Source: Phaeosaccion multiseriatum
Taxonomy: Eukaryota; Protista; Ochrophyta, other classes
Length of the DNA stretch: 64,000 nt
Assembly (NCBI GenBank): GCA_965112735.1
Contig: OZ218954.1
Location: 1,488,001 to 1,552,000 of the forward strand
Direction: 5' to 3'
Below are positions 1,453 to 61,030 of this stretch, one piece after another. The position numbers and the translations under genes were made by a program. The stretch's first letter is position 1. The number at the start of each line of letters is the position of its first letter. The notes under the pieces were generated by a model. The model was not told the DNA's origin. It did not search any database and was given only the letters and a program-made list of their open reading frames with translations.

Positions 1453-1490
<38 letters not shown>

Positions 1491-9199: not shown

Positions 9200-9270
9200 T
9201 GTGCGTGCGTGCGTGGGTTCGAGCGTGCGTGGGTTCGAGCGTGCGTGGGTTCGAGGGTGCGTGCGTGCAT
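9200..9270. repeat. Short tandem repeat (GCGTGCGTGGGTTCGA-like units)
   Basis: Three near-identical units visible in the convergent 3' intergenic region. Confidence 0.7.
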
Positions 9271-9454
9271 GGGTGCAATGACTATTTTGTATTTCAACGT
9301 ATCCGCCAGCCCCTTGGCTACACCCCGCCGTCTCGCACCGGCGCACTCATCCAACGCTGATAAGGCGCTACAGCCCGAGAGCCGTTGCTCATTGTTCCGT
9401 GGGCGGCATCAATCCGCGACTCGTAGTTCCTTCCCCCTCGTCCGCTCTCATTAG

Positions 9455-33105: not shown

Positions 33106-34764
33106 ATGTCGCCAGCCGAAAGAGAGGGCGGCCGGCGGTCAGTGCTACGTAGCCTGGGGGGTTGGGCGGCAGTCACTGCGGTATTCACGTTCTCGACCTT
33201 TAAGGGTGATGGAAAAGGAGGTGAGCTTGGAGCTGTGGAGCTGTCCGTCTTCGTGACGGCCATCCTCACGGCCTCGATTTACTTCGGCTCCAGTCTGTTT
33301 GTGGGCCTGGGACACTCCCCATTATCGAAGTCGGACACAGCCGGCAGCAGCAGTGCGGTTGATGCCGTCTCTACCGCTCCAAAGGGCTTCTTCCGCTTTC
33401 GCAATGTCTACCTTCTCGTGCATCTGTTAGCGACGCTCGCAGACTTCATGATGGGACCGTACCTCTATGAGCTGTACTCAGAGAAGGGCTTTGAGATTAA
33501 GGACATTGGGCTGCTCTTCACCGCCGGCTTCGTGTCTGCCGGGGTGGCCAGCATGTGCATCGGTGCGGCTGTGGACAAGTTCGGGCGGCGCAAAGGCTGC
33601 CTGGCGTCCTGCTTCCTGCACGTTCTGCAGTGCCTCATGCTTAGGTCAGGGAGCTACCGCGTTTTGTTTCTGGGGCGGGCCATTTCCGGAGTGGCGTACG
33701 CCCTTTTTGCCACGTCCTATGAGTGCTGGATGGTGGACGAGCACCACAGCAGAGGCTTCCCCTCGGCTCTGCTGGGAAGAACTTTCAGCCAATACGTGCA
33801 GGGTATGGGGTTGGTAGCTGTGGGCGCCGGCCATATATCGGGCATCGGGGTGGACAAGGGCTGGGGCATCCAGGCCCCATTCGACTTGTCAGCGGCAACG
33901 GGCGTGGTCGTAGCAGCGCTGCTCATGCTGATGTGGACGGAGAACTACGGCACCCCACAGGCAGGCAGCAGCAGCAGCGGAGGTGTCGGTACCGCACTGC
34001 GTGACGCCTTGGGCAACACCCGTCTCGCCTGCAAGCAGATCGCCTCCAACCCCAAGACTCTGTGCGTTGGTCTGTACCAGTCCTTCTTTGAGAGCGCGAT
34101 GCTCACCTTTGTCGTCATGTGGACGCCGGTGCTGGACGCAGCGGCCGAGCAAGACGCCGCAAGGAGAGGACTTCCCTCCGTGAGCATTCACCACGGCGGC
34201 GTGTTCACGGGCTTTATGATCGCGGTGATGGGTGGCAGCACGGCCTTTGGCTTCCTGACGGAGGTGCTACCCTACAAGTGGAGGATGAGCTCCGAGAAGG
34301 TGCTGCTGTGGGTGGGCTTTGTAAGTATGACGTGCATGTACACCGTCGCCAGCTTCGAAACGCCCGCCTTCCTCATGGCGGCCATGCTCGTGTTTGAGGG
34401 GTGTGTGGGCGTGTACTTCCCGGCCATCGGCACGATGAGGTCCAGATACATCGAGGACAGCGCACGCGGCACTGTGATGAACTTGTTTCGGGTGCTGCTC
34501 AATGCGATTGTGGTCATCATGCTGACAGGGCCCATCGGCAGCGACTGGGAGCTGAGCGTCAAGAAGCACGTGGTGTTTGGCATCTGTACGGCTCTGTTGG
34601 CGGCTGCGGTGCTCGTTCAGATGTATCTTCTGCACAGCACTAGGAACAGTGGTAGCAGCGGTAGCAGCACCACAAAAGTGGAAAAGGACAGCAGCAGCAG
34701 CAGCAGCAGCAATGCTCCCGATGATGATGTCCCCCTCTTGGACAATGTCGCAGTCAACGCGTGA
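33106..34764 (+). CDS. MFS transporter of the MFSD5/MOT2 (molybdate-anion transporter) family, intronless
   Basis: FFRFRNVYLLV..LATLADFMMGPYLYELY, DKFGRRKGC, LGRAISG, YECWMVDEH, WTENYG, QSFFESAMLTFVVMWTP, FEGCVGVYFP, RGTVMNLFRV.LN. Confidence 0.88.
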   Translation: MSPAEREGGRRSVLRSLGGWAAVTAVFTFSTFKGDGKGGELGAVELSVFVTAILTASIYFGSSLFVGLGHSPLSKSDTAGSSSAVDAVSTAPKGFFRFRNVYLLVHLLATLADFMMGPYLYELYSEKGFEIKDIGLLFTAGFVSAGVASMCIGAAVDKFGRRKGCLASCFLHVLQCLMLRSGSYRVLFLGRAISGVAYALFATSYECWMVDEHHSRGFPSALLGRTFSQYVQGMGLVAVGAGHISGIGVDKGWGIQAPFDLSAATGVVVAALLMLMWTENYGTPQAGSSSSGGVGTALRDALGNTRLACKQIASNPKTLCVGLYQSFFESAMLTFVVMWTPVLDAAAEQDAARRGLPSVSIHHGGVFTGFMIAVMGGSTAFGFLTEVLPYKWRMSSEKVLLWVGFVSMTCMYTVASFETPAFLMAAMLVFEGCVGVYFPAIGTMRSRYIEDSARGTVMNLFRVLLNAIVVIMLTGPIGSDWELSVKKHVVFGICTALLAAAVLVQMYLLHSTRNSGSSGSSTTKVEKDSSSSSSSNAPDDDVPLLDNVAVNA

Positions 34765-36663: not shown

Positions 36664-36815
36664 CAAGAGGTCAGCGAAGAGCTGATGGGTGCCCTCTCGC
36701 AGGTAGGGATAGGCAGCTAAGGGCCGTGTGTCCTAGATGTCCCTCAGCAAGAGTTTAGGGTTCGGTGGGCCCTCGAAGACAGGCCACACTGCAGGCATTT
36801 GAGTAACAGGTGGAT

Positions 36816-37140
36816 GAGGAGGAGGAGGAGGAGGAGAAGGGAAGGAAGAAATAGAAGAAGAAGAAGAAGAAGAAGAAGAAGAAGAAGAAGAAAGAAGAAG
36901 AAGAAGAAGAAGAAAGAAGAAGAAGAAGAAGAAGAAGAAGAAGAAGAAGAAGAAGAGGCAGGAGGAGGAGGAGGAGGAGGAGGAGGAGGAGGAGGAGGAG
37001 AAGAAGAAGAAGAAGAAGAAGAAGAAGAAGAAGAAGAAGAAGAAGAAGAAGAAGAAGAAGAAGAAGAAGAAGAAGAAGAAGAAGAAGAAGAAGAAGAAGA
37101 AGAAGAAGAAGAAGAAGAAGAAGGAGGAGGAGGAGGAGGA
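36816..37140. repeat. Compound (GAA)n/(GGA)n polypurine microsatellite
   Basis: About 320 bp almost purely purine on the + strand. Confidence 0.95.
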
Positions 37141-37782
37141 CATAGAGTGAGCAACGTTCCCAGCCCTGATGTCATATTTTTTTTACTACGTAGTACTATT
37201 CAGGAACGACTAAGAAAAGTCACATGTACCGGCAGCAAGACGAAGACACACTGTGCCCTTCCCCGAGACAATATTCTTCGAGTGACTCTTCTCTCTCTCA
37301 CCTGTAGCCAATCAGCTGTGCGCATACGCTTCTATGACTTCCTCCACCATTTACAGACGCCTGGAAACGCCAGCCTCCCGCCACAAGCTTGGTACCCCCC
37401 AAGTAGAGGAGGGCCGGTTGCGAGGGCATTCCCATCAGATACCTGCACCAGTTCGAGGAAGACACATGGGTACGCAAGCACATAAGGAGGGAAGTTTTGG
37501 GTCGAGGGGGGCAATACGCACATCAAACATATGCGTGTCGTCTTGCCAACAGCGCAGGACATACCGTGCGTCTTACCGTGTCAACGCTTCGTATTGTCTT
37601 TGAAAAGCAAGGAAGGGCAGGAGGGAGGGAGGGAGGGAGGGAGGGAGGGAGACAGGGAGGAAGGGAGGGAGACAGGGCAGGAGGGAGGGAGGGAGGCAGG
37701 GAGGGTGGAATGTAGCAAGCCCCTTCTGGTGCCATCCATGCTGTTTCCCCCCCCCCCCCCTCCTTTGTTAATTTTAACTCTC

Positions 37783-39108
37783 ATGGTCGCGGGTCTTTCT
37801 CTGCAGAGGCTAGCTTTGTTGTTTGCTTTCCTCGTTTTTCTCTTGCTGCTGCTGTGGCAAAGGCACCCCCATGAAGATGTTCTCAATATCAATGAGGATG
37901 TTGTTCTCAATGAGGATGAGGACTCTACACCGCCGTCTACCGTATCCCCTCCACGCTTCAAAGGCTTGTTGAAGGAAGCTATCGACTGGTCTGTTGGTAG
38001 AATCACACAGATGGGCAACTCTACAATCCCCCCGTGGGGCAACTTCACAGCCCCCCCGCCGTGCGACTGCCAGGAGCGTGACTGGTCATTAGACTTGGCC
38101 AAATGCTGGGGGCGGGGGCCATCGCATGTCCCATTCATTAAACGGGATGGGAACAATGCCATCACTGTGAGCAATGATACCATCACTGTGAGCGATGGGC
38201 TGAGTTCGATGTGTGAAGCGTACCGGATGAGGGGCGCGCGCTTTACCCTCACTGTGGAGAAGTTGCCACCTCCAGTGGGAGCAGCAGGGGCTGATGCCCA
38301 GCCTGATGGAGATATTGGTGATCGTCGTCACGTGGCCGTGTTTTTGCACGTGGCGTCGAACCCAGACGGGAGAGGGCTGGACATTCTTCAAGAGTACCTT
38401 GAGCTGATAGAAAGGACGGGCCTGTTGCAGCGCGCAGACGTCATCTATCTTGGGGTGGTGGGAGACCTCAGGGCCCCCCACCTGACTGAACTACTCAAGA
38501 AATACCCCAAAGCATCGGTGATTGTGGGGTCAGAGGACATGACCAAGAGTGAGATGCCAACGATCACGGCCATGCATGCCTACGCGACGCTCGTTCCCGA
38601 GGACAGCGCGCTGCTGTACATGCATACCAAGGGCATCAACCAGAAGGCACATCAGGAGGAGTGGAGGCACATGGCACAGTACTGGCTAATTGAGCAATTC
38701 AGCCTGTGCCTGCAGGTGCTACGACATTTCGACACGGCAGGGGTGAATCGGACCCGGATAAGGTGGTTCCACTACAGTGGAAACTTTTGGTGGACGAATG
38801 CTGGCTACCTGGCGGCCGGTCCAGCTTCGCTCTGGAGCGTTCCCGTGTGGAATGTGGCGAGCCGATACAGCGCGGAGAGTTTTATCCAGGGTCCCCAAGT
38901 GCCCTCGGCTACAAGGGAGAATATGACGGATGTGCAGATGAGAGAGCACCAGGCTCGGCACTATTGCTTGTACGAGGCCCCGCACAACATGTACAAAGCA
39001 CCGACGCCGCGAAGCTCGTATGATTCATTGCCCATTTTAGCAAGGGATGATCCGACCTGCCCACGCGTGCCGTCAGATGCTGAAGCGAAGGCGGCAGCAG
39101 CAGCATGA
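37783..39108 (+). CDS. Type II membrane, glycosyltransferase-like protein with YxHTKG / HYSGNFWW motifs, intronless
   Basis: Probable start MVAGLSLQRLALLFAFLVFLLLLLWQ (transmembrane anchor). Motifs E.PTI..MH.Y, LLYMHTKG, WR.M..Y..IE....C...L..FD..GVN, HYSGNFWW....YL, RYSAE.FI. The GT function is inference. Confidence 0.7.
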   Translation: MVAGLSLQRLALLFAFLVFLLLLLWQRHPHEDVLNINEDVVLNEDEDSTPPSTVSPPRFKGLLKEAIDWSVGRITQMGNSTIPPWGNFTAPPPCDCQERDWSLDLAKCWGRGPSHVPFIKRDGNNAITVSNDTITVSDGLSSMCEAYRMRGARFTLTVEKLPPPVGAAGADAQPDGDIGDRRHVAVFLHVASNPDGRGLDILQEYLELIERTGLLQRADVIYLGVVGDLRAPHLTELLKKYPKASVIVGSEDMTKSEMPTITAMHAYATLVPEDSALLYMHTKGINQKAHQEEWRHMAQYWLIEQFSLCLQVLRHFDTAGVNRTRIRWFHYSGNFWWTNAGYLAAGPASLWSVPVWNVASRYSAESFIQGPQVPSATRENMTDVQMREHQARHYCLYEAPHNMYKAPTPRSSYDSLPILARDDPTCPRVPSDAEAKAAAAA

Positions 39109-39224: not shown

Positions 39225-39457
39225 CATTGCGAAAACCACTGGAGCTATGAGTGTGAGTGGCAAAGTGGAGGGGGGGAACGTTGGCCTCTTGCGGCCCGCC
39301 TTCGGGTAGAGGAGAGCGCATCTTTAGAAACTTGGCAGGCTCGCGGGTAGAGGTGACTCTGCGACCTTGTTTCAGGTTCACCGCCGAGACTGCACCACAC
39401 AACTGGAGAAGCAGCAGCAATTTCTTCTGTCGCATCACACTATTTTGTATTTTGTGA
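39225..39457 (+). pseudogene. Frameshifted fragment paralogous to the EEP C-terminus at 49860-50130
   Basis: RGERIFRNLAGSRVEVTLRPCFRFTAETAPH vs RGDRIFSNLAVSQAEVTLRPCFSFTAETAPH. DNA-level match such as CCTTGTTTCAG.TTCACCGCCGAGACTGCACCACAC, in inverted orientation. Confidence 0.85.
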
Positions 39458-39958: not shown

Positions 39959-41704
39959 ATTTTTTCCTGTATTTCGCTGATGCCCACCTGTTTTCGCGCT
40001 GCAATAAGAGGATCAACGCTGCTTAAAGAACCACAACTGCTACATTCCAGCAGCAGTAATGGCTTAGTGAAGGCTTGTTCATGGCAGGAAGGTGGCAGGG
40101 CTGGTAGTAGCAGCAGCAGTCAAGCAAAGAGAGGTACATTTGTCACCACCATACCACCAGCAGCAGCAGAGACAAATGGAGGAGAATGAAGAAGCTGTAG
40201 CGGGGCAGCACAAAAGGATGGAGCAGCACCACCTGTGTGACAGTCCTGAAGAGATACCTGGCGCACAGGGCTCTGAGAATACGAGTGGAAAGGCCACAGG
40301 AGCGCACAACGACGATGAGAGTGGTTGGGACGACGAGATTTGGACGCAAGCCGGTGCTCCGGCAGATGCAGCCGCTGCTTCGGTGCCACCAGCGACCGCT
40401 TCGAAAACTGGCATTCAAGCGAGAGTGGAGACTGAGCTTGCAACAATCGCCGCAGCACAGGAGGAGAGACGGAAACAATTGCAGACAGCCAAGCAGGGGG
40501 GTTGAAAAACGAGAAGGCGGGTATAGAAGATGCTTACAATGTTCGAGGAGGACGAGGCCGGTCCCTGAAGGGATTACGCGAGAAGCTGCGGTTGAATGGT
40601 GCAGCTATGAAAGGAATTGATGAGGATTTGCTTTTCCCAGCGGAGAAGGAGGAGAAGTGAAAGAAGGAGATGGAGGAGAGGAAGAAGAAGGGCTGTGACG
40701 TGTCTTCGAGCGCAGACAGGGTAGATGGTGCAAGGGGTGACCACTTCGTAGGATTTTCTTCGCCGCCCCTCGGTCGCACGTCTAAGCGGTACGTTCTCAA
40801 TTATCTCCTCTTCCTTCTTGATGCCTGGCTGCTCTTGTCCACGCCCCCCGCCCACTCTCGGGCCGCCCTTTCTGAACATACCTTGACACACTTCTTTCCC
40901 CTGTTGCTCTCGCCCCCTTTCTACATCTTTTTTTGTGCTAACAGGGGTGAGAAAGACGAGGATGAGGACGAGGAGGATGGAAATACGGGCGAGGAGGGGG
41001 CGGTGGTGGTGGGGGAGGGTTTGGGAAGAAGAATAGACCACCAGCGCAGACTGAGTTCATCAAAGTGGCACTCGAGGCGGCAAGGGATCCAAAGGAAGGG
41101 TTGCCTACCTGGCAAACTCCCTACTACAGGGCCTCGACGCCAAGCCGCCAGTCTGAAGTGGGAGGGTATGCCCAACGTGACGTGTTTGTCTGGGCCCCCC
41201 ACCTCTTCCACAACCTTGGAGAGGACCACCAGCAGCCTCTTTGCGCATGGGATGCATCGTCAGAGTGTGTAAAACCTTATGGGTGGACGTCGCCGCAGCG
41301 GGCTGTGTCTGTCACGAACCTCGAGCTGGAGGAGGAGGAGGAGGAGGGGGGGGAAGGGGGGGAGGGGGAGGAGGAGGAGGACCATCATCATCAGCAGCAA
41401 GAGAATCACAAGGAGGAGGAGGGGGGAGGCGAGCAGGAGGAGGATCAGCTGTGGTAGAAGGAGAAGGAGAAGGAGGAGGAGGAGGAGGAGGAGGAGGAGG
41501 AGGAGGAGGAGGAGGAGGAGGAGGAGGAGGAGTAGGAGCAACAGCAGCAGTAGGAGTAGCAGGTGGTGCTGCTGCTGGAGGAGAAAGGGGGGGGGGGAGG
41601 AGGAGGAAGAGTTGCAGGTGCTGCTGAGGCTGGAGAAGGAGGGGGGGGAGGAGGAGGACGAGGAGGGGGAGGAGAGCAGCAGCCGCCGCGGCACTGTGGC
41701 CGGC
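39959..41704 (+). mobile_element. Degenerate ~1.7-kb repeat, copy 1 (Zisupton/KDZ-like N-terminal coding remnant)
   Basis: Highly similar to the reverse complement of ~59340-61030. Frameshifted coding includes GYAQRDVFVWAPHL..PLC....C.KPYGW..P.RAV, recalling the Y..LF.W.P..CP..C..GW..R.V motif of Zisupton-type transposases. Family call is inference; the repeat itself is directly seen. Confidence 0.7.
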
Positions 41705-42796: not shown

Positions 42797-43519
42797 ATGA
42801 GGATCGGAAAGAGAATTATGGAGTTGGCTTTGATGGCATCGTCTCTCAATGGGGTCAGGACGAAGCTAGTCACGAGGGAGGAATCCGAGCCAGCAACGAG
42901 GGGGCTAATTAAAAACAGCAACGAGCAGCTCTTCCACTTGGTTGTGTCGCAGCTGGATCAACATGACGTTCCATATGTTATCATGTATGGAACACTACTG
43001 GGCTTGTGGCGCTCCCAGAGTCTAATACCGAATGACTCCGACTGTGATCTTATGGTGATGGCGGAGGACGCAGACGCTTTTGTGGCCGCTGTTTACGAGG
43101 GTACGAAGCAGTTCGAGAATGTGGCTGTACAGCAATTTCCAAATATCATTCAGATATCAACAGACCCCAAGGCGAAACTTGAAAACTACCATCCCACGAA
43201 GGCGGGCGAAGGCTACGTTATGATGGATATTTACGTGATGATCCCCAACGGCACGAGAGAGGTCATTTTAGACTCTTGGAGCAAACTGCGATACAAATGG
43301 GACCACATCTTTCCAGTGCTTATGATGCCGCTTTACCTCACCGAGACGAACGAGAATGTCACCGTCAGTGTCCCGCATGAACCCCAAGCCATAATCCAAG
43401 CTATTTATGGCAACAACTGGAGAATTCCCATCGATGATGATCACGGCAAGAACCGATCGATAAGTCCGTTCTGTGGCGCGGGGACTAGGGTAGGAAAGGT
43501 AAGAGGGGATTGCTTTTAA
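42797..43519 (+). CDS. LicD/fukutin-family phosphotransferase (nucleotidyltransferase fold), intronless
   Basis: YVIMYGTLLGLWR.QSLIPNDSDCDL, MDIY, IFP, VSVPHEP..I.QAIYGNNWRIP: all hallmark LicD motifs. Confidence 0.9.
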   Translation: MRIGKRIMELALMASSLNGVRTKLVTREESEPATRGLIKNSNEQLFHLVVSQLDQHDVPYVIMYGTLLGLWRSQSLIPNDSDCDLMVMAEDADAFVAAVYEGTKQFENVAVQQFPNIIQISTDPKAKLENYHPTKAGEGYVMMDIYVMIPNGTREVILDSWSKLRYKWDHIFPVLMMPLYLTETNENVTVSVPHEPQAIIQAIYGNNWRIPIDDDHGKNRSISPFCGAGTRVGKVRGDCF

Positions 43520-43719
43520 TTTCCAAAGAGCGCGTGCTTTTTGTCTTTTGGAGGGGACCGGCGGGAGGATGCGGCAAGGCATACATCTTCTCGCCACTCC
43601 TACTCTGATCCACACCACGGGGCAAGAGAAAGGCATTCGAAGTGGACAAGAAACACGCACAAACACACACATACTCCCTTGACGCAGTCGGCTCGAGGCA
43701 TGGTTTCTCTGGCTCCTTG

Positions 43720-43895
43720 CTTCTGGCTTCTGGCTTCTGGCCGCTGGCGAGGGCTGGCTTCTCGGTTTTCGGCCGCAGGCCGCCTCTGGCTTCTAGCTTG
43801 TCGCTCTTTCCCGCTGACGACTTGGCTTCTGCTGGTCGCAGGCCAGCCCCTGGCTTCTCGGCTTTCGGCCGCAGGCCGCCTCTGGCTTCTGGCCA
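43720..43895. repeat. Array of TTCGGCCGCAGGCCGCCTCTGGCTTCT-type subrepeats, inverted relative to those in 41740-41930
   Basis: Reverse complement matches AGAAGCC.GAGGCGGCCTGCGGCCGAAA at 41743-41770. Confidence 0.75.
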
Positions 43896-45148
43896 CCGGG
43901 AAGGAGATAGAGGGCAAGAGGAGAACGACGACGTGGCACTAGTCTCGGGTGCCCAAGTCTCGAGCGGGCAGAGCGCTGAAGCGCCCCAGGAGGGAGGGGA
44001 AGAAGAGGGGTGAAAATTGAGGGTCGCATACGTAATATTATCAAATAATTAACGTACTTCCGACTTCTAAAGGTGGCAATGTGTTCGTAAGAGGCAGGCG
44101 GCGCCAGTAGTGGCTAAAGAAGAAAAAAAAGGAGGGGGGGGGGGGGAGGGGTAGGTGCTGTCCGCAAAACGGGTGTGTCCGCCCACCCAGGTTTTACTCT
44201 TAGATAGCGTTGTAAATCGCATCCTCGCCAAGGAGAGCATGTAAAGAGTACCAAATCGGCGCACGGTCATGAGGTATAGCCTCGCGTTGTATCTGGCCCT
44301 TATCTATCGTCATACCCTCTCTTCCCCCTCGATCGAGGGTCAGGATGACGACGAAAAGGGGCCCTTCCCACTCTTTAAATTCTCTCCCTCACTCTGTAGC
44401 TCCTGAAAGGACACTTCGAGTTGCCCAGCACTCAGCAGACTATGTATCCCTCAAGTCTTCTCAAGGGTTTCACATCTCGTGGTCTGCTGGTCGCACACGC
44501 TCCTCCCTCTCCTCACCATTTTTGAGGTGAAAACTGCTGCCATAAGTGTTTCCATCTCGCCTCACCCCTTCTGCTCCACAGCGCCTGCAATCGCACTCTT
44601 AGCTGCTCAACGTCGACTTCCATATGTGGGTCGCAGTCTGCTCAAAGCCATTCCTCCCTCATGGGCTCTTGCTCGCACACGCTCTTCCCCCACTCCCCCC
44701 TTGTTGTTTGAGGCCCAAATTCCCGCCAAAGCAACGGACATTTCAGCTCCACATGTTAGCCCACTATCTCGTAAGACCGCACTCCCAGCTTCTCATCGGC
44801 TATTTGACTACATAATCCGTATTCAGCCCGAAGATTATCACCTCTTGTGTGAGCTACGCCTCTCTCTTTCTCCCTTGTTCAGGGGCAAAGATCTCGTCAA
44901 CATATCAGCACATTTCAACTCCTAAATCGCTCTATACAGACGCAACAATCAGACTTTAAGCTGCTCAACATCTAGAATACTGTCTGTACCTCAGATCTCC
45001 CGAAGATCTTCGCCTGTGGTGCTCTGCAGCGTGCGTAATGCCTCTTTTCCTGAGCCCACTCAAAAATGTGGATTCTACTGACATCCAGGGCGGTTAATTG
45101 ACATACAAGGGGGGGGGGGGCGTCGCTACGCTTCCACACGCGAAAAGG

Positions 45149-46246
45149 ATGATGTATTGTTCGCTCAGGAGGGCCACCATCATTGCTTACATATGCCAGC
45201 AAGTGTTGCTTGTTCTCATCATTCGCTATTCCGAGCAGAGAGCAAATGCGGAACCAGACAGGATAACTTACGTACCCTCAGCAGCAATTGTCTGTTCCGA
45301 GTATCTCAAGCTCGTTCTGAACGCGTGTCTTGAGTTTTTTTTTCAGTACAAGTACATGGAAGGGAATTTGGGGTTCAGCAGTGTGTGCAGGGGTTTGGCG
45401 ACCCTGGAGGCCTTGAAGCTCGCTGTCCCTGCTCTTCTCTACGTAGCCCAGAACAACTTGGTCTTTGTGGCGCTCGGCAACCTCTCTGTGCCCGTGTACC
45501 TGGTCACCAATCAAGGAAAACTACTCGCAACAGCATTATTCAGCAGAGTGTTGCTTGGAAAGTCAATTTCAGCTATTCAATACGCATCTCTGCTCATGCT
45601 GGCAGCTGGGGTATCCATCACGCAACTCTCGTCGAGGGAAGGAGAACAAGGTGACAAAGAGACGATGGGGGATGACAAACTGGTTGGGTTCCTGGCTATT
45701 TCGGCATCTTGTCTTACCTCGGGATTTGCTGGAGTTTACTTTGAGAAGATACTCAAGCAATCCCATACTAAGGTGTCGGTCTACATGAGGAATATGCAGC
45801 TGGCTTTGTGGAGTATCCCGTTGGCATTCCTTCCACTGCTCCACGATCGAGAGACTCTCCAGCGGAATGGCTTCTTCCAAGGTTTCGATCGCGTTGTTTG
45901 GGGTATTGTCATCTGTCAGGCCTCAACTGGGCTGGTTGTGGCGCTCGTCATGAAGTACGCAGACACGATTTGGAAAGGCTTTGCATCGTCCATGGCAGTA
46001 ATCGTGGCCACCATAGTGTCAAAATGTATTTGGAACTCAAAAATTGATCATTGGTTCATCATAGGAGCTGGTGTTGTGCTTGCCGCGGTTCAAAGCTATT
46101 CAAAGTATCCCGCTTCAGCTGACCTGCGGGGAGCATGCCGTTCTGAGGAAGCACTTGGTCCGCTCGCTGGCAAAGCGTCTGCTGAGGCCTCTGGAGAAGA
46201 TGAGGAAGCTTTGATGTACCACCATAGAGTGCCAGCCCACCCCTGA
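45149..46246 (+). CDS. SLC35A-type nucleotide-sugar transporter, intronless
   Basis: SEYLKL, LKLAVPALLYVAQNNL.FVAL.NL, TNQGKLLATALFS..LL, SGFAGVYFEKILK, RNMQL, GFFQGF, GLVVALVMKYADTIWKGFA.S. Confidence 0.93.
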   Translation: MMYCSLRRATIIAYICQQVLLVLIIRYSEQRANAEPDRITYVPSAAIVCSEYLKLVLNACLEFFFQYKYMEGNLGFSSVCRGLATLEALKLAVPALLYVAQNNLVFVALGNLSVPVYLVTNQGKLLATALFSRVLLGKSISAIQYASLLMLAAGVSITQLSSREGEQGDKETMGDDKLVGFLAISASCLTSGFAGVYFEKILKQSHTKVSVYMRNMQLALWSIPLAFLPLLHDRETLQRNGFFQGFDRVVWGIVICQASTGLVVALVMKYADTIWKGFASSMAVIVATIVSKCIWNSKIDHWFIIGAGVVLAAVQSYSKYPASADLRGACRSEEALGPLAGKASAEASGEDEEALMYHHRVPAHP

Positions 46247-46563
46247 CGTGATTCTGAGGGAGGCGTGGCTGATCGTGATTCTGGCGGCCGCTGGAGGCGT
46301 GATACGTGATTCTGCTATTATGCAGGCGTGATTCGTGCTTCTCGGCGGTCGCCTTAGAATTAAGGCAATGAATGAGGAGAACATCGCCTTAGACCTCTTC
46401 AGTCGCCCCATCCACGCTGCTGTTCGCCTGCAGGCTCGTCGACTTGTCCGCGTTTTTCTGATATTGGTCGCAGAACTTTGCTGCGTTGGTCGGGGCTCTT
46501 ATTTTAGTGCGCCCGGTCATCCCTATGCAAGTATCGATATCGACCTAAACCCAGACAGCACAT

Positions 46564-46840
46564 GAGAAACGGTGCGTGGCCCGTTTCTCACTAACCTCCC
46601 AGCAGGTTGGTCGTTTAGGATGGCTCGGGGATAAAGCTAATAGAGACAAGCAAGGCTGGCTGCCATGTAAAGAGTCACGTTGCTCTCCACCTAGGATGGG
46701 ACCAGCTGCATGGCCAAGGTAATAGCAACCCCAAAGCCAGCCTGGCAGCCAGCCTTGTCTCTATTAGCTTTATCCCTAGGCCATCCTAAACGACCAACCT
46801 GCTGGGAGGTGAGTGAGAAACGGGCCACGCACCGTTTCTC
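46564..46840. mobile_element. Foldback/MITE-like element with ~100-bp inverted arms and terminal hairpins
   Basis: GAGAAACGGTGCGTGGCCCGTTTCTCACT...GGCTGGCTGCCA is mirrored by TGGCAGCCAGCC...GAGAAACGGGCCACGCACCGTTTCTC. No TSD seen. Confidence 0.8.
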
Positions 46841-47166
46841 TTTGCCTGGGCGTGGGCCATTGACATAGACGGGAAAGCACGATCCGCCTGCGGCAACATG
46901 AGAAGTGGTGCAGTGGGCTGGCGCATGAGGCGCAATTCTATCGCTCGCATCTCAGCTTCTGAGGTAGCTGGCGGGAAGAGGCGGGGGTGAAGCGAGGGGG
47001 ATGTTAGAAGTGGCCTAGTTGGGGTCTCTTGGAGACCCAATCAGTAGTGGAACGGCCGGAAAACGGGCCAACGAGACGAAAATCAGTAGTAAAGAAGAGA
47101 AGTGTGTATGTATGTATGTATGTATGTATGGGCTGGCTTCCGGGTGCTTACTTTTTTTTCCTCTCA

Positions 47167-47315
47167 TCCTGAACCACTACTATTGACTATACTCTATATA
47201 TTCTAAATAATACTTCTCTAAATATATACTTCGAAGTATATTATTATTAATATTATTACATAAATATATTCTAAATGTGTAATAAAGTATACTAAGCAAT
47301 ACTAGTGGTTCAGGA
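47167..47315. repeat. AT-rich mini inverted-repeat element
   Basis: TCCTGAACCACTACTATTG ... CAATACTAGTGGTTCAGGA (18/19 complementary) around a strongly AT-rich core. Confidence 0.7.
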
Positions 47316-47404
47316 ATTTGAGTTTAGCACATTGCTTAGCTTCTGCTTGCCTTCAGCTTGGCTTCTAGTCTAGCTGTCAAATTTTAGCTTAGCATACCCT
47401 TAGT

Positions 47405-47797
47405 TTACGCGGCACTTTGAATTTCGCCCTTCACTTCGGTCGTTGAGACCCCCTCCGTCCTTGGAAGATATATCGATTGGCACCCCGCGAACGTAAACTT
47501 ACCCTTCCAGTCGTCACCCATGACGAGGATCGAGGCTTCATACTTTCGTATGTAGTCCTCCTTCAACTCGAGTGACTCTTCCAGGAACACCTCATCAACG
47601 CATCGAAGTTCCTTAATCAGGTCCATGCGCGCCTCCTCGTCGTACACAGGGAGAATTCCTTTCTTGCGAAAATTCAAAGCATCGGAGGACACGCCCACGA
47701 CAAGTCTGTCGCCACGTTCTTTCGCTCGGCGAAGGATTGCAAGGTGGCCTCGGTGAAATAGGTCAAAGGTGCCGAATGTTATGACCGTTTGAGTCAT
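47405..47797 (-). CDS. tagD: Bacterial-type glycerol-3-phosphate cytidylyltransferase-like enzyme (TagD family), 130 aa, intronless
   Basis: MTQTVITFGTFDLFHRGH..IL.RAK..GD.LVVGVSSD..N..KKG, R......+..VDEVF.EES.E.K..YI......LVMGDDW.GKF, YLPRTEGVSTT. This is the stand-alone TagD architecture with HxGH and RTxG(I/V)STT. Confidence 0.92.
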   Translation of the reverse strand: MTQTVITFGTFDLFHRGHLAILRRAKERGDRLVVGVSSDALNFRKKGILPVYDEEARMDLIKELRCVDEVFLEESLELKEDYIRKYEASILVMGDDWKGKFTFAGCQSIYLPRTEGVSTTEVKGEIQSAA

Positions 47798-48210
47798 TTC
47801 TATGGCCTGTCTTTTAAGGATGAGACAGAAGAGAAAAGGGGCCAGGAAGGGAGGAGGAGGGAAAAGAGATCGGAAAAGAGGGGAAAAAGACTTGACAAAA
47901 GCCAAAGCCGCACAAGTAGAGGCAGACAACTTGATATTGGAAAGGAGTGATGCCTTCCGCAGTGAAGAATGCCCACTATTTTGAGTTGTGCGCCAGGGTG
48001 GCAACAGAGGGGGGGGGGGTGAGAGGAGAGCATTGACAAAACGATGATGGTCAAACCCGCGTATCAGCCACCATGGCAGAGCTACTCACCGAACAATCGA
48101 TCGAGACAATCAAGTCGTAGGCTTGGGGCGGCGGTAACGGAGGAAAAAGGGGGGTGATGCATATAAATATTTAATTTTTTTTTTTTATTGACTTAATACT
48201 TAATAGGGGG

Positions 48211-48285
48211 CGTGCTATCTGCTATCAGCCGATCCGCTGTCCGCTATGCTATCGCGAATGTGGGCGATAGCGCGTCAGGGGTCGA
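48211..48285. mobile_element. MITE family A, copy 2 (left end lost)
   Basis: GCTATC repeats and right TIR GATAGCGCGTCAGGGGTCGA. Left TIR replaced by a poly(T)-ATTGACTTAATA tail resembling the 42-kb retro tails. Confidence 0.75.
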
Positions 48286-48735
48286 ATACAATGTATCGAG
48301 GTCAATATCGATGTACGAGTACGGTCACGGCCGTCACTTCCTTGGGCGCATCTCTCAGTAGGTATAAACAATTGAAGAGGAAGAGGATAATAGGGTATGC
48401 CAGCATATAGTCGCGTGCGAAAAAAATACCTCAATTCTTTCTCTCTCCCACTACTCCCCTACCTGCTTCCTTGTAACTTCCGCTTTGTATTGACAGTTAT
48501 TTATTTACACGCACGCTCGCGCACACATGTACCGAGACACACATACCGAGACACACACACACGCACAGACACTCACACGCATCCTCTCTCACACTACCCT
48601 CCTACCCTGGTTGCACCACTGCTGGTTGCACTACCCTCCTTCCTCACACACACATACATACAGAGCCTGACACACACACACACATACGCACAGACACCCA
48701 CACACACACACCTCCCTCTCACACTCACTACCCTG

Positions 48736-49075
48736 CTACCCTGGTCGCACAACTGGTTGCACTACCCTCCTCCCTCTGACCCTCTGAAGCGTCCGCTCCT
48801 GAAGCCCCCGAAGCCGCTGCTCCTCTGTCTTCCTCTTGTCTAACGCCTTCCCACCAATAACAACTCGGAGCCGCTCCTCTGTGAGACCCCCGTAGATGCC
48901 AATACAATCGATGTTGGTGGCTCTGGAGATGGCCACGTAGGTGAGGCCAGTCGTCTTCTCCTGTGTGCCCGGAACGAGCACCACCTTTCCCCTCATGGTC
49001 TGACCCTGCGCCTTCCACACCGTCCACGCCCAACTGAGCCTCAGGGGAAACTCCTTCCGAGCCCTGCTGGCCGAT
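48736..49075 (-). mobile_element. Pif1-like helicase C-terminal fragment (Helitron remnant)
   Basis: FPLRLSWAWTVWKAQGQTM...GLTYVAISRA matches Pif1 motifs V-VI; only the 3' end of the helicase is present. Confidence 0.8.
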
Positions 49076-49199
49076 TGGCCACTAGCACTACCTTTCCACT
49101 CGGTGACGACTGGAGAGATAGATAGGGCCAGATACACTCATGGGCCTTTTCAGCTTCGCGTGAGCCGCACTGAGCCTGGGTGAGGCTTTGCTGTATTCT

Positions 49200-49800
49200 C
49201 TCGCCGCAGTAGCAGCCCTGTGGCTTTGCGCCAGCGGAATTTCACAATCCTCGCCAGCGTTGGCACTTTCCCTTCACTCACCTCGTCCAGCTCTAAGCTA
49301 CGCTGCTCCTGCATTGCGCTGGCTGGTAGCCCACTGCGGAGAGCACCAACGGATATGATACCTGCCTGCCTGGCGAACCCTTCCGGAAGGCCGGAAGGCC
49401 GCTCGCTCACCCCATCGATGAACGGCTATGTCAAGTCTCTGTGGTACGCCCGTTGCAGCTGCTCCACACCATTGCCTCGCACCCGTTTCATAGACAGATA
49501 CACTGCGCTGCGCTGCAGGACCTGATAGTGCTCTTCAATCACTCGCCCGTGCTGAGTACAGTAGGCCCCCAGTGATGGCCAAGGCAAGACTGTATAAGGA
49601 CCATCCCACGAATGCTGCAGAGCCTTGAGTTGCGCTGACGGGGGCCCTTCAAGTTCTTCCCCTTCTTCCTGTGCGGCGGCGCCAGGGCGATACAACATCA
49701 CCTTGGTCCCTGGCCGCAGGGGCGTCGGCCAACGGCGTGAGGCATTTGTCAACTGCAACCTCCCGTGGTAGTCACAGCGTCTCCCATTGACCACCGCCGC
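49200..49800 (-). mobile_element. Ty3/gypsy integrase C-terminal (GPY/F) fragment
   Basis: LRPGTKVMLYRP....KALQHSWDGPYTVL, followed by decayed sequence. Confidence 0.6.
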
Positions 49801-49859
49801 AGCCGCAGCCAGACGTGCCGGCAGCTCATTGACCCATGTCGAGCCAGCCAGTCTTGAAT

Positions 49860-52800
49860 TCATCCGCCGTTCCTGGAAGTAAGCTGCAGCACAATCCCCA
49901 AAACCGCGTGATCCGAGAGCAGAAGTTGCGGCCGTTTCTGCTTTCGGCCGTGTGGTGCAGTCTCGGCGGTGAAGCTGAAACAAGGCCGCAGCGTCACCTC
50001 TGCCTGCGAGACTGCCAAGTTGCTAAATATACGGTCTCCTCTATGCCTGCCGTCGTAAGGCGGGCTGCACGTGGCCGGCACAGTGCTGCCTTTGCCGCTG
50101 ACGCTGACAACTCCACTGCCCGCTGCACCAGCAATAGCGGCGCCTTGATCCCCACCCATCACCACAGAGCCACCACCTGCCACCGCTTTGGCTACGACAT
50201 CCCTCACGCGCGAGAATCGATTCTCATCCACCTTATGGACAGAGCCAATTAGGATGGAGTGGAGAGGCGCGTCAGGAAGAGGCCACGAGATGGAGACAAA
50301 CAACCCCATCCGAGCGGCCAACCTCTTTTCAAAACCCTGTGCGTTGGTGAAGCCTGGCTTCGCCGAGTAGTACCCTCCCTCCAGATCGTTGCGCACAATC
50401 CTGGGGTCAAACAGGCGTGCCTTGGACAAGATTGCATTCCCATGCAGCCCCAGGGTGTTGTCCTGACCTCTGGTACGCTGCTGCTCCTCCTCGTTGCCGT
50501 TCGTGAGCTCGACAAACTCCAGCCCCCACGCGTAGTTCATGCCCAATTCGAACGCCAGCATGCGAGTAGTGTGCAGGTTCTCACTCCGCGCCATGCCAAT
50601 GTCCATCTCATTCAGGATTATAATGTCTGGGTTTTGTAGAGCGACTGTCTCCCTCACCGTCTCGGCAAAGGGCAGCCAGTGAGTCCCACGCGCCGCATTG
50701 AACGCCAACACCTTCACAGTAGTGGCAGCAGCATCGTCAGCGCCCCCCATAGCCGCCGGCCGTGATGGTGGCCGAAAGAAGGGAGAGATGGAGTTGTCAA
50801 TCTCTACTTGCGTCAAGTTACCAAAGGTCGTGGTATACAGCGTTTGTAGCTCCTTGTCTCCCGCGCCCTCCGCCCACGCCTTCCTGTCCTCGATCGATGA
50901 GCCCCATAGGCTCGTTGCCTTCTCCATCTCCCATGCTGCGAGAGGAAGATTGGTAGTGAGCCCCGTCTCTGCGTGCGTATAGGTCAAAGAGCGCTCGGCT
51001 TGGTTCTCTCGTACAATGCCAAGCTCGCGGGCCATCGAGTCGGCGTCGCCGTGCCGAAGCACCTGACCAGTGACAGCGTCGACTTCGGTTACGTGTATGA
51101 CTCGGTCGTTCACGGCGAGAATCTCGAGTCCCCTGCCCTCGTGCGCGGCGGCAGACGGTACCCGATGCACGAAAGGAAAGTGCTCTGACAAGCGGCAACA
51201 ATCCAGCGCAGGCTGTGCCTTGGAGTCTGCGCGTCTGCAGGCGGCCTTGTGCTCCTGGCCCGTACCAAGGTACGTACAGTCCCTGGGCAGGCCCCCATGT
51301 CTGTGACTACCCCCGGGAGCCCTGCACGCGTCAAAATTGTATCTCCTCTGCGCTATCTTTAGCGAGGGACCCATCAACATCGTGCCTGGAGGGGGGGGGG
51401 GGGGCAGGGGGCGGGAACAGCGTAGAGGCAAAGCGGGAATGAGGAGCGAGCAAAGCAACCGAAGAAAGGCGGGTGATGGAGGGGGGCTTCGCATCAATGC
51501 TTACGTAGAGAATTTCCGCTGACTGAAAAAAACAAAACAAAATAAAGCATCCCCCCCTCTTACTCTCAAGCGTGCCAAAGCTTAGCTCCTCACGCTATGT
51601 AGTACCTGCGAATGGATACTCTCGCATCGGGAAGATGGCTTCAGACGGCCAAAAGATATTCAGCTCCTGCTCCAAGTGGGTCACCCACGCCTGTTTGGAA
51701 GGGTGGAGAGTCTCGTGAGGGAGGCCCGGAGCGTGACTGGCAGAGTACGCGGCGCCATGGCTGCAGGCAGCAAAAGAGGACTACTCCTTCTCAGACGCAG
51801 GCGAAGGCAACGGAGCCAGTGCCGCAAACTCTACTCTACTCTCGTATCTCACCCGAGAAGTCCAGCATTGTTCCGCCCCGCCACAAGTATGAATCAACAC
51901 TCACCTCACGGATACCAGCCACGCCGTTCTTGGTGTCATTTTTCCACATGAACGCGTCTACGAAGGGCCAGCCCATCTTCTTCTGGGTCCCTGGGTAGCC
52001 CTCCGGCCATATCTTGACCGCGTTCAGCATCGGCTCGCAGTGAAACTTCATATCTCCCACGGTAAAGCCCCGGCACGCGGAGACGAACCGATCGAGGTAG
52101 TCAAAGGGCACGATCACGTCAATGTCATCGTCCCACGGAATGGGTCCTCCGTGCAGCACAGCTCCGAGGTGAGAGCCTGCCCACAACATGCAGGTAGTGC
52201 CGACTTGCTTGGCAACAAGGTCGCACACTTTGAGGAGACAAACCTCTGAAGCCGCGGCCTCTGTGGTAAGAGCAGTCACCTGGAGAGACCTGTCGTGGAA
52301 CGAAAAGTAGTTCACCCGCTGGTCGCGGAAATAGCTCACCACCTCAGGGCATAGCTCCCCCACCCAAGCGTCTGGGAACACCCCCACATCGGAAGCTGCA
52401 TACTTGGACGGTACGTCTCTCTGCTCATTCGCAGCCTCTCCTCCCCTCTGACCCTTGCGTTCCCCCTTTCCTTGCGCAGGAGCGAAGTAACTGAGGGTAG
52501 CATCGGTGAAGGCCTGTCTCTCACCAAGGCGTTGGAAGAGAGCATCGTCTTGGGAGCCTGTCCCTGCCTTCTTCTCTCCAGCCAGCTCGCGCAGCTGATC
52601 AAGCGAGTCGAGGGAAGGAGGACAGAGATGGTTCCCTCGTACTAATCCAAAGTCAGAAAGGTGATATTCTGCGGTCTCGGGAAGTGCCTCCTGCTCCTGC
52701 CTTGCAGATGTTAGAACGTCTTTGACTACGTCTTGATCATGGTCCAGCCTCGGTATCCGGTACATGCTGTTGAGGAAGGCAAATATGGACCCAAGGACAC

Positions 52801-52918
52801 ACAGCGTAATGATGAGAATGTACCGCTTTGCCGCCAGGTCGGCCGTCCGCGGCGCGTTTGCCGCCCATCTTCCTGAATTCAACCCCCCATTCCTCATTCT
52901 TTCTCTTTTTTTTCTCAT
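49860..52918 (-). CDS. Type II membrane LicD-EEP (endonuclease/exonuclease/phosphatase) fusion protein, 3 exons, ~874 aa
   Basis: Exons 52918-51905, 51690-51606 and 51385-49860 (GT-AG, phases 0 and 1) join the two track ORFs. TM YILIITLCVLGSIFAFL. LicD motifs WAGSHLGAVLHGGPIPWDDDIDV, GWPFVDAF, IFPMREYPFAGTMLMGP..RY...C. EEP motifs VLAFNAARG, PDIIILNEMD.GMARS, HGNAILSK, MGGDQ, DRIF, SDH. Confidence 0.85.
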
Positions 52919-53026
52919 CGAGGGACCAGGGACCAGGGGTGCGTGGTGAGCTAGTGATCCGTCGTGGCTCACAGTTGCCGCCTGCGATCCTCTCTTCTCT
53001 CCTTCACCCTGCATTCCAAGGCAGCC

Positions 53027-53367
53027 ATGGCGGGCCATGAGGACCCGAAGCAGCGAATCCGAGAGCTCCGCCAACTGGAGCACCGCGTACACACGTCGGT
53101 GGAGGCTTCGAATGGGATTGTGACCCTCCTCCAGCACCTGGCCCTCTCCCACCCCACATCGGTGACGCTCGCTGCCATGCACGCTCTGCGCCGCGTGTTT
53201 ACGCTGCTCATCGACGAAGGAGAGATGAAAGAGGGGAGGGGGAAAGGGCTTCGGAGGAAGAAGCAGCAGCAAGAGCAGGACGAAGAGGAGGGTGAGAAGG
53301 AGGGCGGGGGTCCATCGAAACGAGCAAGGGCCTCTTCCGACAAGGGACGCCAGGGGACAGGAGAGAA

Positions 53368-59324: not shown

Positions 59325-61030
59325 CCCTGATCCCCCCCGTACCGGCCACAGTGCTGCGGCGGCTGCTGCTACTGCTGCTCTCCTCCCCCTCCTCGTCCTC
59401 CTCCTTCCCCCCTCCTTCTCCAGCCTCAGCAGCACCTGCAACTCTTCCTCCTCCTCCCCCCCTCCTTCTCCTCCAGCAGCAGCACCACCTGCTACTCCTC
59501 CTCCTCCTCCTCCTCCTCCTCCCACAGCTGATTCTCCTCCTGCTTCCCCCCCCCTCCTCCTCCTTGTGATTCTCTTGCTGCTGATGATGATGGTCCTCCT
59601 CCTCCTCCTCCTCCTCCTCGCTCCTCCTCCTCCCCCTCTTCCCCCCCCTCCTCCCCCTCCTCCTCCTGCTCGAGGCTGGTGACAGACACAGCCCGCTGCG
59701 GCGACGTCACCCATAAGGTTTTACACACTCTGACGATGCATCCCATGCGCAAAGAGGCTGCTGGTGGTACTCTTCAAGGTTGTGGAAGAGGTGGGGGGCC
59801 CAGACAAACACGTCACGTTGGGCATACCCTCCCACTTCAGACTGGCGGCTTGGCGTCGAGGCCCTGTAGTAGGGAGTTTGCCAGGTAGGCAACCCTTCCT
59901 TTGGATCCCTTGCCGCCTCGAGTGCTACTTGGATGAACTCAGTCTGCGCTGGTGGTCTATTCTTCTTCCCAAACCCTCCCCCATCACCACCGCCCCCCTT
60001 GTCGCCCGTATTTCCATCCTCCTCGTCCTCATCCTCGTCTTTCTCACCCCTGTTCGCACAAAAAAAGATGTAAAAAGGGGCCGAGAACAACAGGGGGAAG
60101 AAGTGTGTCAAGGTATGTTCAGAAAGGGCGGCCCGAGAGTGGGCGGGGGGCGTGGACAAGAGCAAGCCAGGCATCAAGAAGGAAGAGGAGATAATTGAGA
60201 GCGTACCGCTTAGACGTGCGATCAAGGGGCGGCGAAGAAAACCCTACGAAGTGGTCATCACTTGCACCATCTGCCCTGTCTGCGCTCGAAGACATGTCAC
60301 AGCCCTTCTTCTTCCTCTCCTCCATGTCCTTCTTTCGCTTCTCTTCCTTCTCCGCTGGGAGAAGCAAATCCTCATCAATTCCTTTCATAGCTGCACCATT
60401 CAACCGCAGTTTCTCGCTTATTCCCTTCAGGGCCCGGCCTCGTCGTCCTCGAACTTTGTAAGCATCTTTTACAGCCGCCTTCTCGATTTTCAATCTCTGC
60501 TTAGGTGTCTGCAATTGGTTCACCGCGTCTCCTCCTGTGCTGCGGCGATTGTCGCAAGCTCAGTCTCCACTGCCGCTTGAGTGCCCGGTTTCGAAGCGGT
60601 CGCTGGTTGTACCGCCGCAGCGGCTTCATCTGCCAGAGCAACGGCTTGCGTCCAAGTCTCGTTGTCCCCGTTACTGTCGTTGTGCGCTCGTGCGGCCTTT
60701 CCACTCGTATTCTCAGAGCCCTGTGCGCCAGAAATCTCTTCAGGACTGTCACACAGGTGGTGCTGTTCCATCCTTTTCTGCTGCCCCGCTACAGCTTCTT
60801 CATTCTCCTCCATTTGTCTCTGCTGCTGCTGATGGTATGGTGGTGACAAATGTACCTCTCTTTGCTTGACTGCTGCTGCTACTACCAGCCCTACCACCTT
60901 CCTGCCATGAACAAGCCTTCACTAAGCCATTACTGCTGCTGGAAGGTAGCAGTTGTGGCCCTTTAAGCAGCGTTAACCCTCTTAGTGGAGGGGGAAAGGC
61001 GGGAGGAAAGCAGCGAAATATAGGAAAAAT
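59325..61030 (-). mobile_element. Degenerate ~1.7-kb repeat, copy 2 (inverted relative to 39959-41704)
   Basis: Near-identical translated blocks on opposite strands, e.g. VVAAAVKQREVHLSPPYHQQQQRQMEENEE and ALEAARDPKEGLPTWQTPYYRASTPSRQSEVGGYAQRDVFVWAPHLFHNL. Confidence 0.85.

Follow-up and report, generated by a model that had tools for sequence, protein, structure and literature searches.

Alcohol phosphates in phosphodiester linkage are central to bacterial walls and to the human dystroglycanopathies, and decoration of this kind is known mainly from bacterial walls and from animal dystroglycan; the machinery of non-animal eukaryotes is almost unexplored. In animals, FKRP and fukutin use cytidine diphosphate (CDP)-ribitol and CDP-glycerol as donors, and CDP-ribitol is among the substrates of SLC35A carriers (PMC8192872, PMC8587909). 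The glycerol-3-phosphate cytidylyltransferase (GCT) is not conserved in mammals, where the Golgi carrier for CDP-glycerol is unidentified (PMC8587909). The present analysis concerns a 64,000-nucleotide stretch of the genome of the ochrophyte Phaeosaccion multiseriatum (assembly GCA_965112735.1, contig OZ218954.1, positions 1,488,001 to 1,552,000 of the forward strand), referred to below as the window. Between positions 42797 and 52918 it holds genes for two LicD-family phosphotransferases (LicD1 and LicD2, the latter fused to an EEP domain), an SLC35A-type carrier and a TagD-like GCT. Judged from its sequence, this phosphodiester-decoration neighbourhood is real and probably functional. That all four genes form one phosphodiester glycan-decoration pathway is regarded as about an even call.

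Gene content and organization of the locus

A preliminary description of this DNA, made from the letters alone, had recognized a LicD gene, an SLC35A transporter, a stand-alone TagD-type enzyme and a membrane-anchored LicD-EEP fusion. All four were confirmed at the same coordinates by the listing of open reading frames (ORFs) and by hidden Markov model scans, and the LicD, CTP_transf_like and Nuc_sug_transp searches that it had proposed all gave matches. The features of the locus are as follows.

42797-43519, plus strand: LicD1, stand-alone phosphotransferase of the FKRP/LicD fold, 240 aa
45149-46246, plus strand: SLC35A-type nucleotide-sugar/nucleoside monophosphate antiporter, 365 aa, single exon
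47405-47797, minus strand: TagD-like CTP:glycerol-3-phosphate cytidylyltransferase, 130 aa, intronless
48100-49859, no strand: high-copy repeat (transposon remains) seen by read depth, spacer between TagD and LicD2-EEP
49860-52918, minus strand: LicD2-EEP fusion, whole gene, three exons, 874 aa
51905-52918, minus strand: LicD2-EEP exon 1, transmembrane anchor (residues 34-52), stem and start of the LicD domain (GS..LG, PWDDDID)
51606-51690, minus strand: LicD2-EEP exon 2, 85 nt, conserved LicD segment FP..R.Y.F with AG/GT borders
49860-51385, minus strand: LicD2-EEP exon 3, end of the LicD domain, Cys-rich linker (LDCCRLSEHFPF) and EEP domain

LicD1 lies 1.6 kb upstream of the SLC35 gene on the same strand, and the 3' ends of the TagD and SLC35 genes are about 1.2 kb apart. 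The two LicD proteins are only about 26% identical, and LicD1 and LicD2 are therefore not a recent tandem copy.

Four public sequencing runs cover the locus. They are DNA from one sample, with flat depth and no joints at the predicted introns, and contigs built from them run through introns and spacers. In all four runs the stretch 48100-49900 was 10-100 times deeper than its neighbours, with many variant letters, and is therefore a repeat. The preliminary description had placed nothing but transposon debris between the genes; this held for 48100-49900, while the other spacers contain short repeats and no recognisable gene. A Pfam scan of the ORFs within the repeat (48100-49859) gave zero matches. 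By eye, two of them, 48736-49137 and 49426-49983, both on the minus strand, resemble helicase/integrase tails of mobile elements, and the second overlaps the last 40 EEP codons on the same strand in another frame.

Read depth over the TagD gene was 107, 122, 55 and 36 in the four runs, compared to 122, 110, 51 and 48 over LicD2-EEP. The G+C content at third codon positions (GC3) was 0.60 for TagD, 0.60 for LicD1 and 0.55 for SLC35, with 0.54-0.76 in neighbouring genes. Since its depth equals that of its single-copy neighbours and its GC3 falls in the host range, TagD belongs to the host genome, and contamination was ruled out.

The LicD-EEP fusion

The membrane-anchored fusion was established from its transmembrane segment, the spliced frame, homologous fusions and the EEP fold. 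A LicD ORF (51836-53272) and an EEP ORF (49860-51497) are joined via predicted GT-AG introns, the donor site of exon 1 being cgtgag/gtgagt (slash at the exon border). Across both junctions the three-exon model fits the conserved pattern of 12 fusion homologs with no gap. A model with an additional 18-nt mini-exon (51505-51522) was dropped, because it gave six extra residues relative to the 12 homologs, where the three-exon model was exact.

The LicD2 half matched Pfam LicD with E 7.2e-11 (43 bits, gathering threshold 22.6) over the N-terminal quarter of the profile only, and its motif GSHLGA..PWDDDID aligns to FKRP residues 294-330. The protein has one transmembrane segment, at residues 34-52; as this single segment is N-terminal, LicD2-EEP is taken as a type II membrane protein. 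The EEP half fell below the Pfam threshold (PF03372, 18.9 versus 24.5 bits). Its AlphaFold2 model, with a predicted local distance difference test score (pLDDT) of 84.5, shows the four-layer alpha/beta sandwich of these enzymes and was placed in the EEP family by Foldseek with a probability of 1.0, and all 275 PDB matches at E<=0.001 were EEP enzymes, among them TDP2, sphingomyelinase, CNOT6L and nocturnin. The N/E/D/H metal-binding and catalytic residues are kept, including a terminal SDH (Ser-Asp-His). In an alignment (A1), N26, N55/E56, N113 and the D288/H289 pair at the terminus show little or no variation.

The EEP half has 276 relatives. Homologs were found at E 1e-76 and below, and many are 600-850 aa proteins that also contain PF04991. 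They come from the diatoms Thalassiosira, Amphora, Minutocellus, Detonula and Bacillariaceae, from the fungus Paraphysoderma and from marine and sludge metagenomes. The LicD2 half is 35-40% identical to the N-halves of the same fusion proteins. As judged from these homologs, LicD-EEP is one conserved polypeptide present in several eukaryotic lineages.

Two further observations touch this gene. At 39269-39400 on the plus strand lies a 44-codon fragment with 65% identity to residues 798-845 of LicD2-EEP, which belong to the C-terminal part of its EEP domain. A partial duplication seems to have left this remnant, and a slightly raised read depth at 49900-50100 fits this. On a eukaryote-like contig from activated sludge (L001), a stand-alone 338-aa LicD gene (4655-5671, minus strand) lies 0.7 kb from a LicD-EEP gene, a pair that echoes the two-LicD arrangement of the window.

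Identity and origin of TagD

The TagD protein matched CTP_transf_like with E 1.7e-23 and has no targeting sequence. Over residues 4-127 it aligned to the characterised enzymes of B. subtilis (1coz, E 4.8e-32, 113.6 bits) and S. aureus (2b7l, E 8e-31, 109.7 bits), and far more weakly to ECT (57 bits) and CCT (40 bits). The NCBIfam model TIGR01518 aligned over positions 1-125 of 125 with 118.5 bits. Both motifs, HxGH (FHRGH) and RTEGxSTT (RTEGVSTT), are present, and Lys44 is aligned. The most likely product of the enzyme is CDP-glycerol.

TagD is 60-68% identical to bacterial-type proteins. In a tree of 203 sequences it was sister, with a support of 0.74, to a clade made up of 21 unnamed proteins from metagenomes; the TagDs of Campylobacter, Enterobacteriaceae and Roseomonas fell outside this clade. 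In all three of the sister-clade contexts read, TagD stands head to head with a LicD gene for 235-238 aa. The contigs are gene-dense and ORFan-rich, with genes for Erv1/Alr, DUF5901, SNase, ankyrin and HNH proteins. At the loci L007-L009, L115 and L116, which carry this conserved cassette, TagD lies at about 8001-8390 and LicD at about 7220-7950. Elsewhere a close TagD is located between a giant-virus-type RPB2 and a GT17-LicD gene (L040; 672 aa, 8132-10150, minus strand), and another adjoins a GT32/Caps_synth-LicD gene (L053; 1307 aa, 501-4424, minus strand). TagD is also present in metagenome-assembled genomes of giant viruses in IMG/VR, and a cluster of CTP_transf_like (TagD)-LicD fusions exists in bacteria and phages. 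A further member of the TagD cluster, P0385, sits on a 221-kb contig. Because the sister clade occurs in giant-virus-like contigs beside LicD, TagD looks horizontally acquired, and the tree and gene contexts point to a virus or a bacterium as its source.

LicD1 and the SLC35 carrier

LicD1 was identified both by profile and by fold. It matched Pfam LicD (PF04991) with E 5.9e-10 (40 bits, gathering threshold 22.6), with only the N-terminal quarter of the profile aligned. A G-x-L-G loop and an acidic DxDxD motif (NDSDCD) are present, and residues G65, R72, D82 and D84 are invariant in an alignment (A2). The AlphaFold2 model, built on 30 relatives, had a mean pLDDT of 81.6. A sequence search of the PDB gave no match; the fold search alone did so, and its 13 best PDB matches were all FKRP (E 5e-9), clearly ahead of generic nucleotidyltransferases. 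Among 1.84 billion representatives a single protein, P0392, fell below E 1e-30, at 43% identity, and LicD1 is by this measure an isolated lineage. P0392 has an N-terminal transmembrane anchor and a stem rich in N-glycan sites. The idea that LicD1 is an unspliced part of the SLC35 gene was ruled out, as the facing ends of both proteins are complete compared to their homologs.

The carrier matched Nuc_sug_transp (PF04142) with E 2.7e-83 over essentially the whole profile (positions 5-315 of 315), and TIGR00803 was matched as well. Towards the mouse CMP-sialic acid transporter the E-value was 9e-43. Ten residues of the cavity are identical to those of the mouse protein, namely E52, K55, Y98, Q101, N102, K124, T128, S188, N210 and K272 (residue list and SLC35A1 numbering from PMC8411240). 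The closest proteins are diatom-type (37-56% identity), and the nearest relatives of the carrier are 51-56% identical to it.

Four of these carrier homologs are fused to a LicD domain (P0242, P0257, P0260/P0370 and P0253; 556-688 aa). Their architecture consists of the SLC35 domain, a lysine-rich linker, an extra, eleventh transmembrane helix and a LicD-like domain. The fusions are uninterrupted ORFs in three metagenomic contigs (L117-L119) and in an MMETSP transcript of Skeletonema japonicum. The extra helix would, from the predicted topology, put the fused LicD domain in the lumen. The fused domains aligned to LicD1 over its full length (E 5e-10 to 7e-4), compared to E ~0.7 for LicD2. No description of an SLC35-TM-LicD architecture was found in the literature searched.

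Proposed pathway

Three pairings of the genes recur elsewhere: the LicD-EEP fusion, the SLC35-LicD fusion, and TagD and LicD as neighbours or as a fusion. As these pairwise links recur independently, a functional connection is much likelier than chance proximity.

In the proposed pathway a cytosolic TagD-type enzyme would make a CDP-activated alcohol from CTP, most likely CDP-glycerol. The SLC35A antiporter would import this donor into the Golgi against export of a nucleoside monophosphate. LicD1 and the type II LicD2 would then move the alcohol phosphate onto glycans, releasing a nucleoside monophosphate, and the EEP domain fused to LicD2 would cut the phosphodiester in the same compartment. 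By doing so EEP may trim, uncover or erase the product; since it is tethered to the writer, trimming or uncovering would be more natural than full erasure. A cytosolic TagD and a lumenal type II LicD2-EEP are supported by the predicted topologies. Which alcohol is used, what the carrier moves, which glycans are acceptors, what EEP does and whether the genes are co-expressed are matters of inference. We know of no sequence rule from which the donor of a LicD enzyme can be read.

A wider proposal, offered tentatively and regarded as doubtful, is that stramenopile algae and other marine protists run a Golgi phosphodiester system with SLC35-LicD and LicD-EEP writers, to which a virus-derived TagD would here have been added as a dedicated supply of CDP-glycerol, giving teichoic-acid-like substituents on wall or mucilage polysaccharides. 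If true, this would be the first such eukaryotic pathway built on a bacterial-type GCT. If the proposed pathway itself holds, the locus would offer a small and genetically tractable group of candidates for algal glycan decoration. It would also supply a candidate Golgi carrier for CDP-glycerol, or else evidence that LicD enzymes run on uridine diphosphate (UDP)-sugars, and it would give LicD-EEP and SLC35-LicD, both widespread architectures of orphan status, a testable function.

Evidence against a single pathway

Several results weigh against the proposed pathway, and they concern the carrier, LicD1, TagD and the linkage of the genes. Tyr214 and Ser261 are the proposed selectors of cytosine over uracil in SLC35A1 and SLC35A4 (PMC8192872; PMC8411240), and the UDP carriers SLC35A2 and SLC35A3 have Gly and Ala, respectively, at the two positions (PMC8192872). 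The carrier of the window has Ala at both, in the manner of UDP-sugar carriers, and A253 and T260 are replaced by Gln and Val, like Q278 and V285 of SLC35A2. In the LicD-fused orthologs small residues (Ala or Gly) likewise occupy both cytidine-selectivity positions, and the Gln/Val pattern recurs. The best named matches of the carrier are animal UDP-N-acetylglucosamine carriers, with about 40% identity, and its closest named relatives carry UDP-N-acetylglucosamine or UDP-galactose (SLC35A3/A2). As judged by its residues the carrier is thus of the UDP type, and import of a CDP donor is unproven because of the two alanines. The lumenal CDP-donor import put forward in the preliminary description is accordingly not indicated by a carrier in which both cytidine-selectivity residues are missing. 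The selectivity rule, being derived from animals, may be inapplicable in this lineage. Alternatively, the donor of the LicD1-type enzymes coupled to the carrier may be UDP-linked and their by-product uridine monophosphate (UMP), which amounts to a transfer of sugar-1-phosphate.

The LicD1 ORF as read contains no transmembrane or hydrophobic segment, unlike its nearest relative P0392. Directly 5' of its ATG lies a polypyrimidine tract followed by AG, resembling a splice acceptor, and a transposon-like fragment is located about 150 bp further upstream. From this context, the gene may have an unrecognised 5' exon, it may have been cut short by a transposon insertion, or the protein may be a cytosolic enzyme, as the viral LicDs are. 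In the case of TagD, the 118.5 bits obtained with TIGR01518 are below the equivalog cut-off of 165.4 bits, and CDP-glycerol is therefore a likely but not an assured product. Lys46 of B. subtilis TagD aligns to a Gly, and position 45 holds a Lys in its place; the same KK pattern is seen in the viral sister clade.

Linkage was examined in 12 genomic contexts and one metagenome scan, and the four-gene cluster was not found at any other locus examined. Neither TagD nor SLC35 occurred on five contigs carrying relatives of LicD-EEP, neither TagD nor LicD-EEP at three SLC35 ortholog loci (L032-L034) or on the three fusion contigs (L117-L119), and neither SLC35 nor EEP at about 105 loci of close TagDs in viral and metagenomic collections. 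No contig of a relative carried more than one partner type beside LicD, and conserved linkage in relatives or at paralogous loci was thus not seen. This is a weak negative, because the relatives are distant (at most 56% identity) and most contigs are short, but it counts against the cluster by the criterion set in the preliminary description. Of the pathway outlined there, the identities of the genes, the spliced fusion, a cytosolic TagD with a lumenal LicD2-EEP, and the idea of a shared function, backed by the recurring pairs, have stood; conserved four-gene linkage and CDP import were not supported or were weakened, and LicD1 as read has no anchor.

Alternative explanations

The residues of the carrier would be accounted for if the locus held two modules instead of one pathway, the main rival explanation, though considered rather unlikely. 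SLC35 and LicD1-type enzymes would use a UDP-sugar and transfer sugar-1-phosphate, the UMP product would be the counter-substrate of the carrier, and EEP would act like an uncovering enzyme. TagD would be a separate virus-derived gene that serves a cytosolic LicD reaction or some other need for a CDP-alcohol. Sugar-1-phosphate transfer has been proposed for the yeast LicD-family proteins Mnn4/MPO1 with GDP-mannose. Besides the Ala/Gly pattern of the carrier and its fused orthologs, the Gln/Val pair shared with SLC35A2 and the matches to SLC35A3/A2, two further observations fit: no TagD was seen near the fusion on the diatom-type contigs read, and the LicD1 frame as read would give a soluble protein, in common with the viral LicDs of 235 aa paired with TagD. 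However, the closest solved fold to LicD1, FKRP, uses CDP-ribitol, the 3' end of TagD is about 1.2 kb from that of SLC35, and the basis of the selectivity rules is confined to carriers of animals. To our knowledge, a UDP-sugar donor has not been described for any LicD-family enzyme.

That the genes are neighbours by coincidence, gathered with unlinked partners in an intron-poor, repeat-rich region that collects glycan-related and horizontally acquired genes, is distinctly unlikely. The four-gene linkage appears in no relative examined, the genes lie on both strands with repeats between them and no sign of shared promoters, and other glycan genes are scattered through the window. Against this, every pair recurs elsewhere as a fusion or as neighbours, and TagD is rare in eukaryotes, and LicD, the only kind of partner known for it, flanks it twice within 5 kb. 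Still less probable, and highly unlikely, is that TagD and LicD1, perhaps with the DUF8361-like gene described below, are the remains of an integrated giant virus, either decaying or serving the virus. The contigs that carry the sister clade of TagD are rich in ORFans and include Erv1/Alr, DUF5901, ankyrin, HNH and RPB2 genes; LicD1, which has no anchor, borders on a transposon fragment, and the EEP fragment copy at 39269-39400 shows local rearrangement. But no ORF is broken and every catalytic motif is kept, their GC3 is host-like, and the window contains no viral hallmark gene. LicD1 is 22-26% identical to viral LicDs versus 43% to an anchored protein of eukaryote type, and both LicD2-EEP and SLC35 have cellular orthologs and spliceosomal introns. 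Insertion of the whole region from a giant virus was rejected, there being no viral hallmark genes in the window and cellular orthologs for SLC35 and LicD-EEP.

Other genes in the window

Other glycan genes are scattered through the window. One candidate lies 3.7 kb upstream of LicD1.

37531-39108, plus strand: DUF8361-like type II membrane protein, 525 aa, single exon, transmembrane segment at residues 89-107

This ORF had no match in the local Pfam library. In a protein atlas it reached a feature score of 0.95, with 215 of 256 features common to clusters of DUF8361 (PF27674), and its structural neighbours include GT-A enzymes and GT17-DUF8361 fusions of Nucleocytoviricota. DUF8361 is a putative glycosyltransferase family with a GT-A-like fold, rich in members from phages and giant viruses, and the ORF may be a further glycan gene of viral affinity. 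Another glycan-modifying gene may be represented by a 419-aa ORF at 7581-8840 (plus strand), which matched polysaccharide pyruvyl transferase weakly and below the threshold (E 6.5e-5, 23.4 versus 25.3 bits). An MFS_5 transporter (E 2e-62) is encoded at 33106-34764 (plus strand) in one 1.66-kb exon. Together with SLC35, TagD, LicD1 and the ORF at 37531 it makes up a run of intron-poor genes; in other parts of the window, thiolase and UBC genes show up as short exon fragments. Between the glycan genes, microsatellites at 41328-41674 and 36733-37175 (GGA, poly-Glu, poly-Ser, poly-Phe) give rise to long spurious ORFs on both strands, and 41300-41703 is 75% identical to 59342-59694 on the opposite strand.

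Comparison with known systems

Full-text literature searches turned up no paper dealing with algal LicD or TagD, nor with LicD in giant viruses; the preliminary description knew of no account of an algal cluster of this kind. Among the closest counterparts of the locus are the diatom SLC35-TM-LicD fusions, whose carrier is 51-56% identical with the same selectivity residues and whose fused LicD is of the LicD1 type. In contrast to them the window has separate genes in the opposite order, with LicD1 upstream of SLC35, and a LicD1 that as read has no anchor. The viral TagD-LicD cassette shares with the window a TagD of 63-67% identity and a LicD that is nearly the length of LicD1 and aligns to it end to end, but at only 22-26% identity. 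Its genes are head to head, about 50 bp apart, with no SLC35 and no EEP, and no functional description of the cassette was found in the literature searched. With its nearest kin in giant-virus-like contigs, the TagD of the window would link viral glycan genes and the wall chemistry of the host.

Mannose 6-phosphate tagging and yeast Mnn4/Mnn6 mannosylphosphorylation likewise write a sugar or alcohol phosphate onto a Golgi glycan, and Mnn4 is a LicD-family protein. In the mannose 6-phosphate route a second enzyme cuts the phosphodiester, comparable to the EEP domain, but this uncovering enzyme is not an EEP protein, the writer, GlcNAc-1-phosphotransferase, belongs to the Stealth family, and no cytidylyltransferase takes part.

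The bacterial tagD/tarD loci for teichoic acid and licABCD loci for phosphocholine are likewise clustered, with TagD paired with LicD-family proteins, and 1coz and 2b7l are full-length matches to TagD of the window. The bacterial reactions take place on the cytoplasmic side of the membrane, where a nucleotide carrier is not required; choline is activated by LicC and not by TagD, and the classical glycerol-phosphate polymerases are TagB/TagF and not LicD. The genes of the window are, in contrast, separate eukaryotic transcription units, one of them spliced.

The animal alpha-dystroglycan route (ISPD/PCYT2, SLC35A1/SLC35A4, fukutin/FKRP) likewise combines a cytosolic cytidylyltransferase with an SLC35A carrier. 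Its lumenal type II transferases of the LicD/FKRP fold release CMP, and it is one of them, FKRP, that LicD1 resembles best in structure. Linkage is absent among the animal genes, whereas those of the window are clustered. The donor is made in animals by ISPD, of another fold, or by the two-domain PCYT2, and in the window by a 130-aa TagD; the animal carriers have Tyr214/Ser261 where that of the window has Ala/Ala, and animals have neither an EEP fusion nor a carrier-transferase fusion. The parallel that the preliminary description had drawn, both to the bacterial lic and tag loci and to the unclustered animal route, is nevertheless borne out, as the logic of the pathway matches both.

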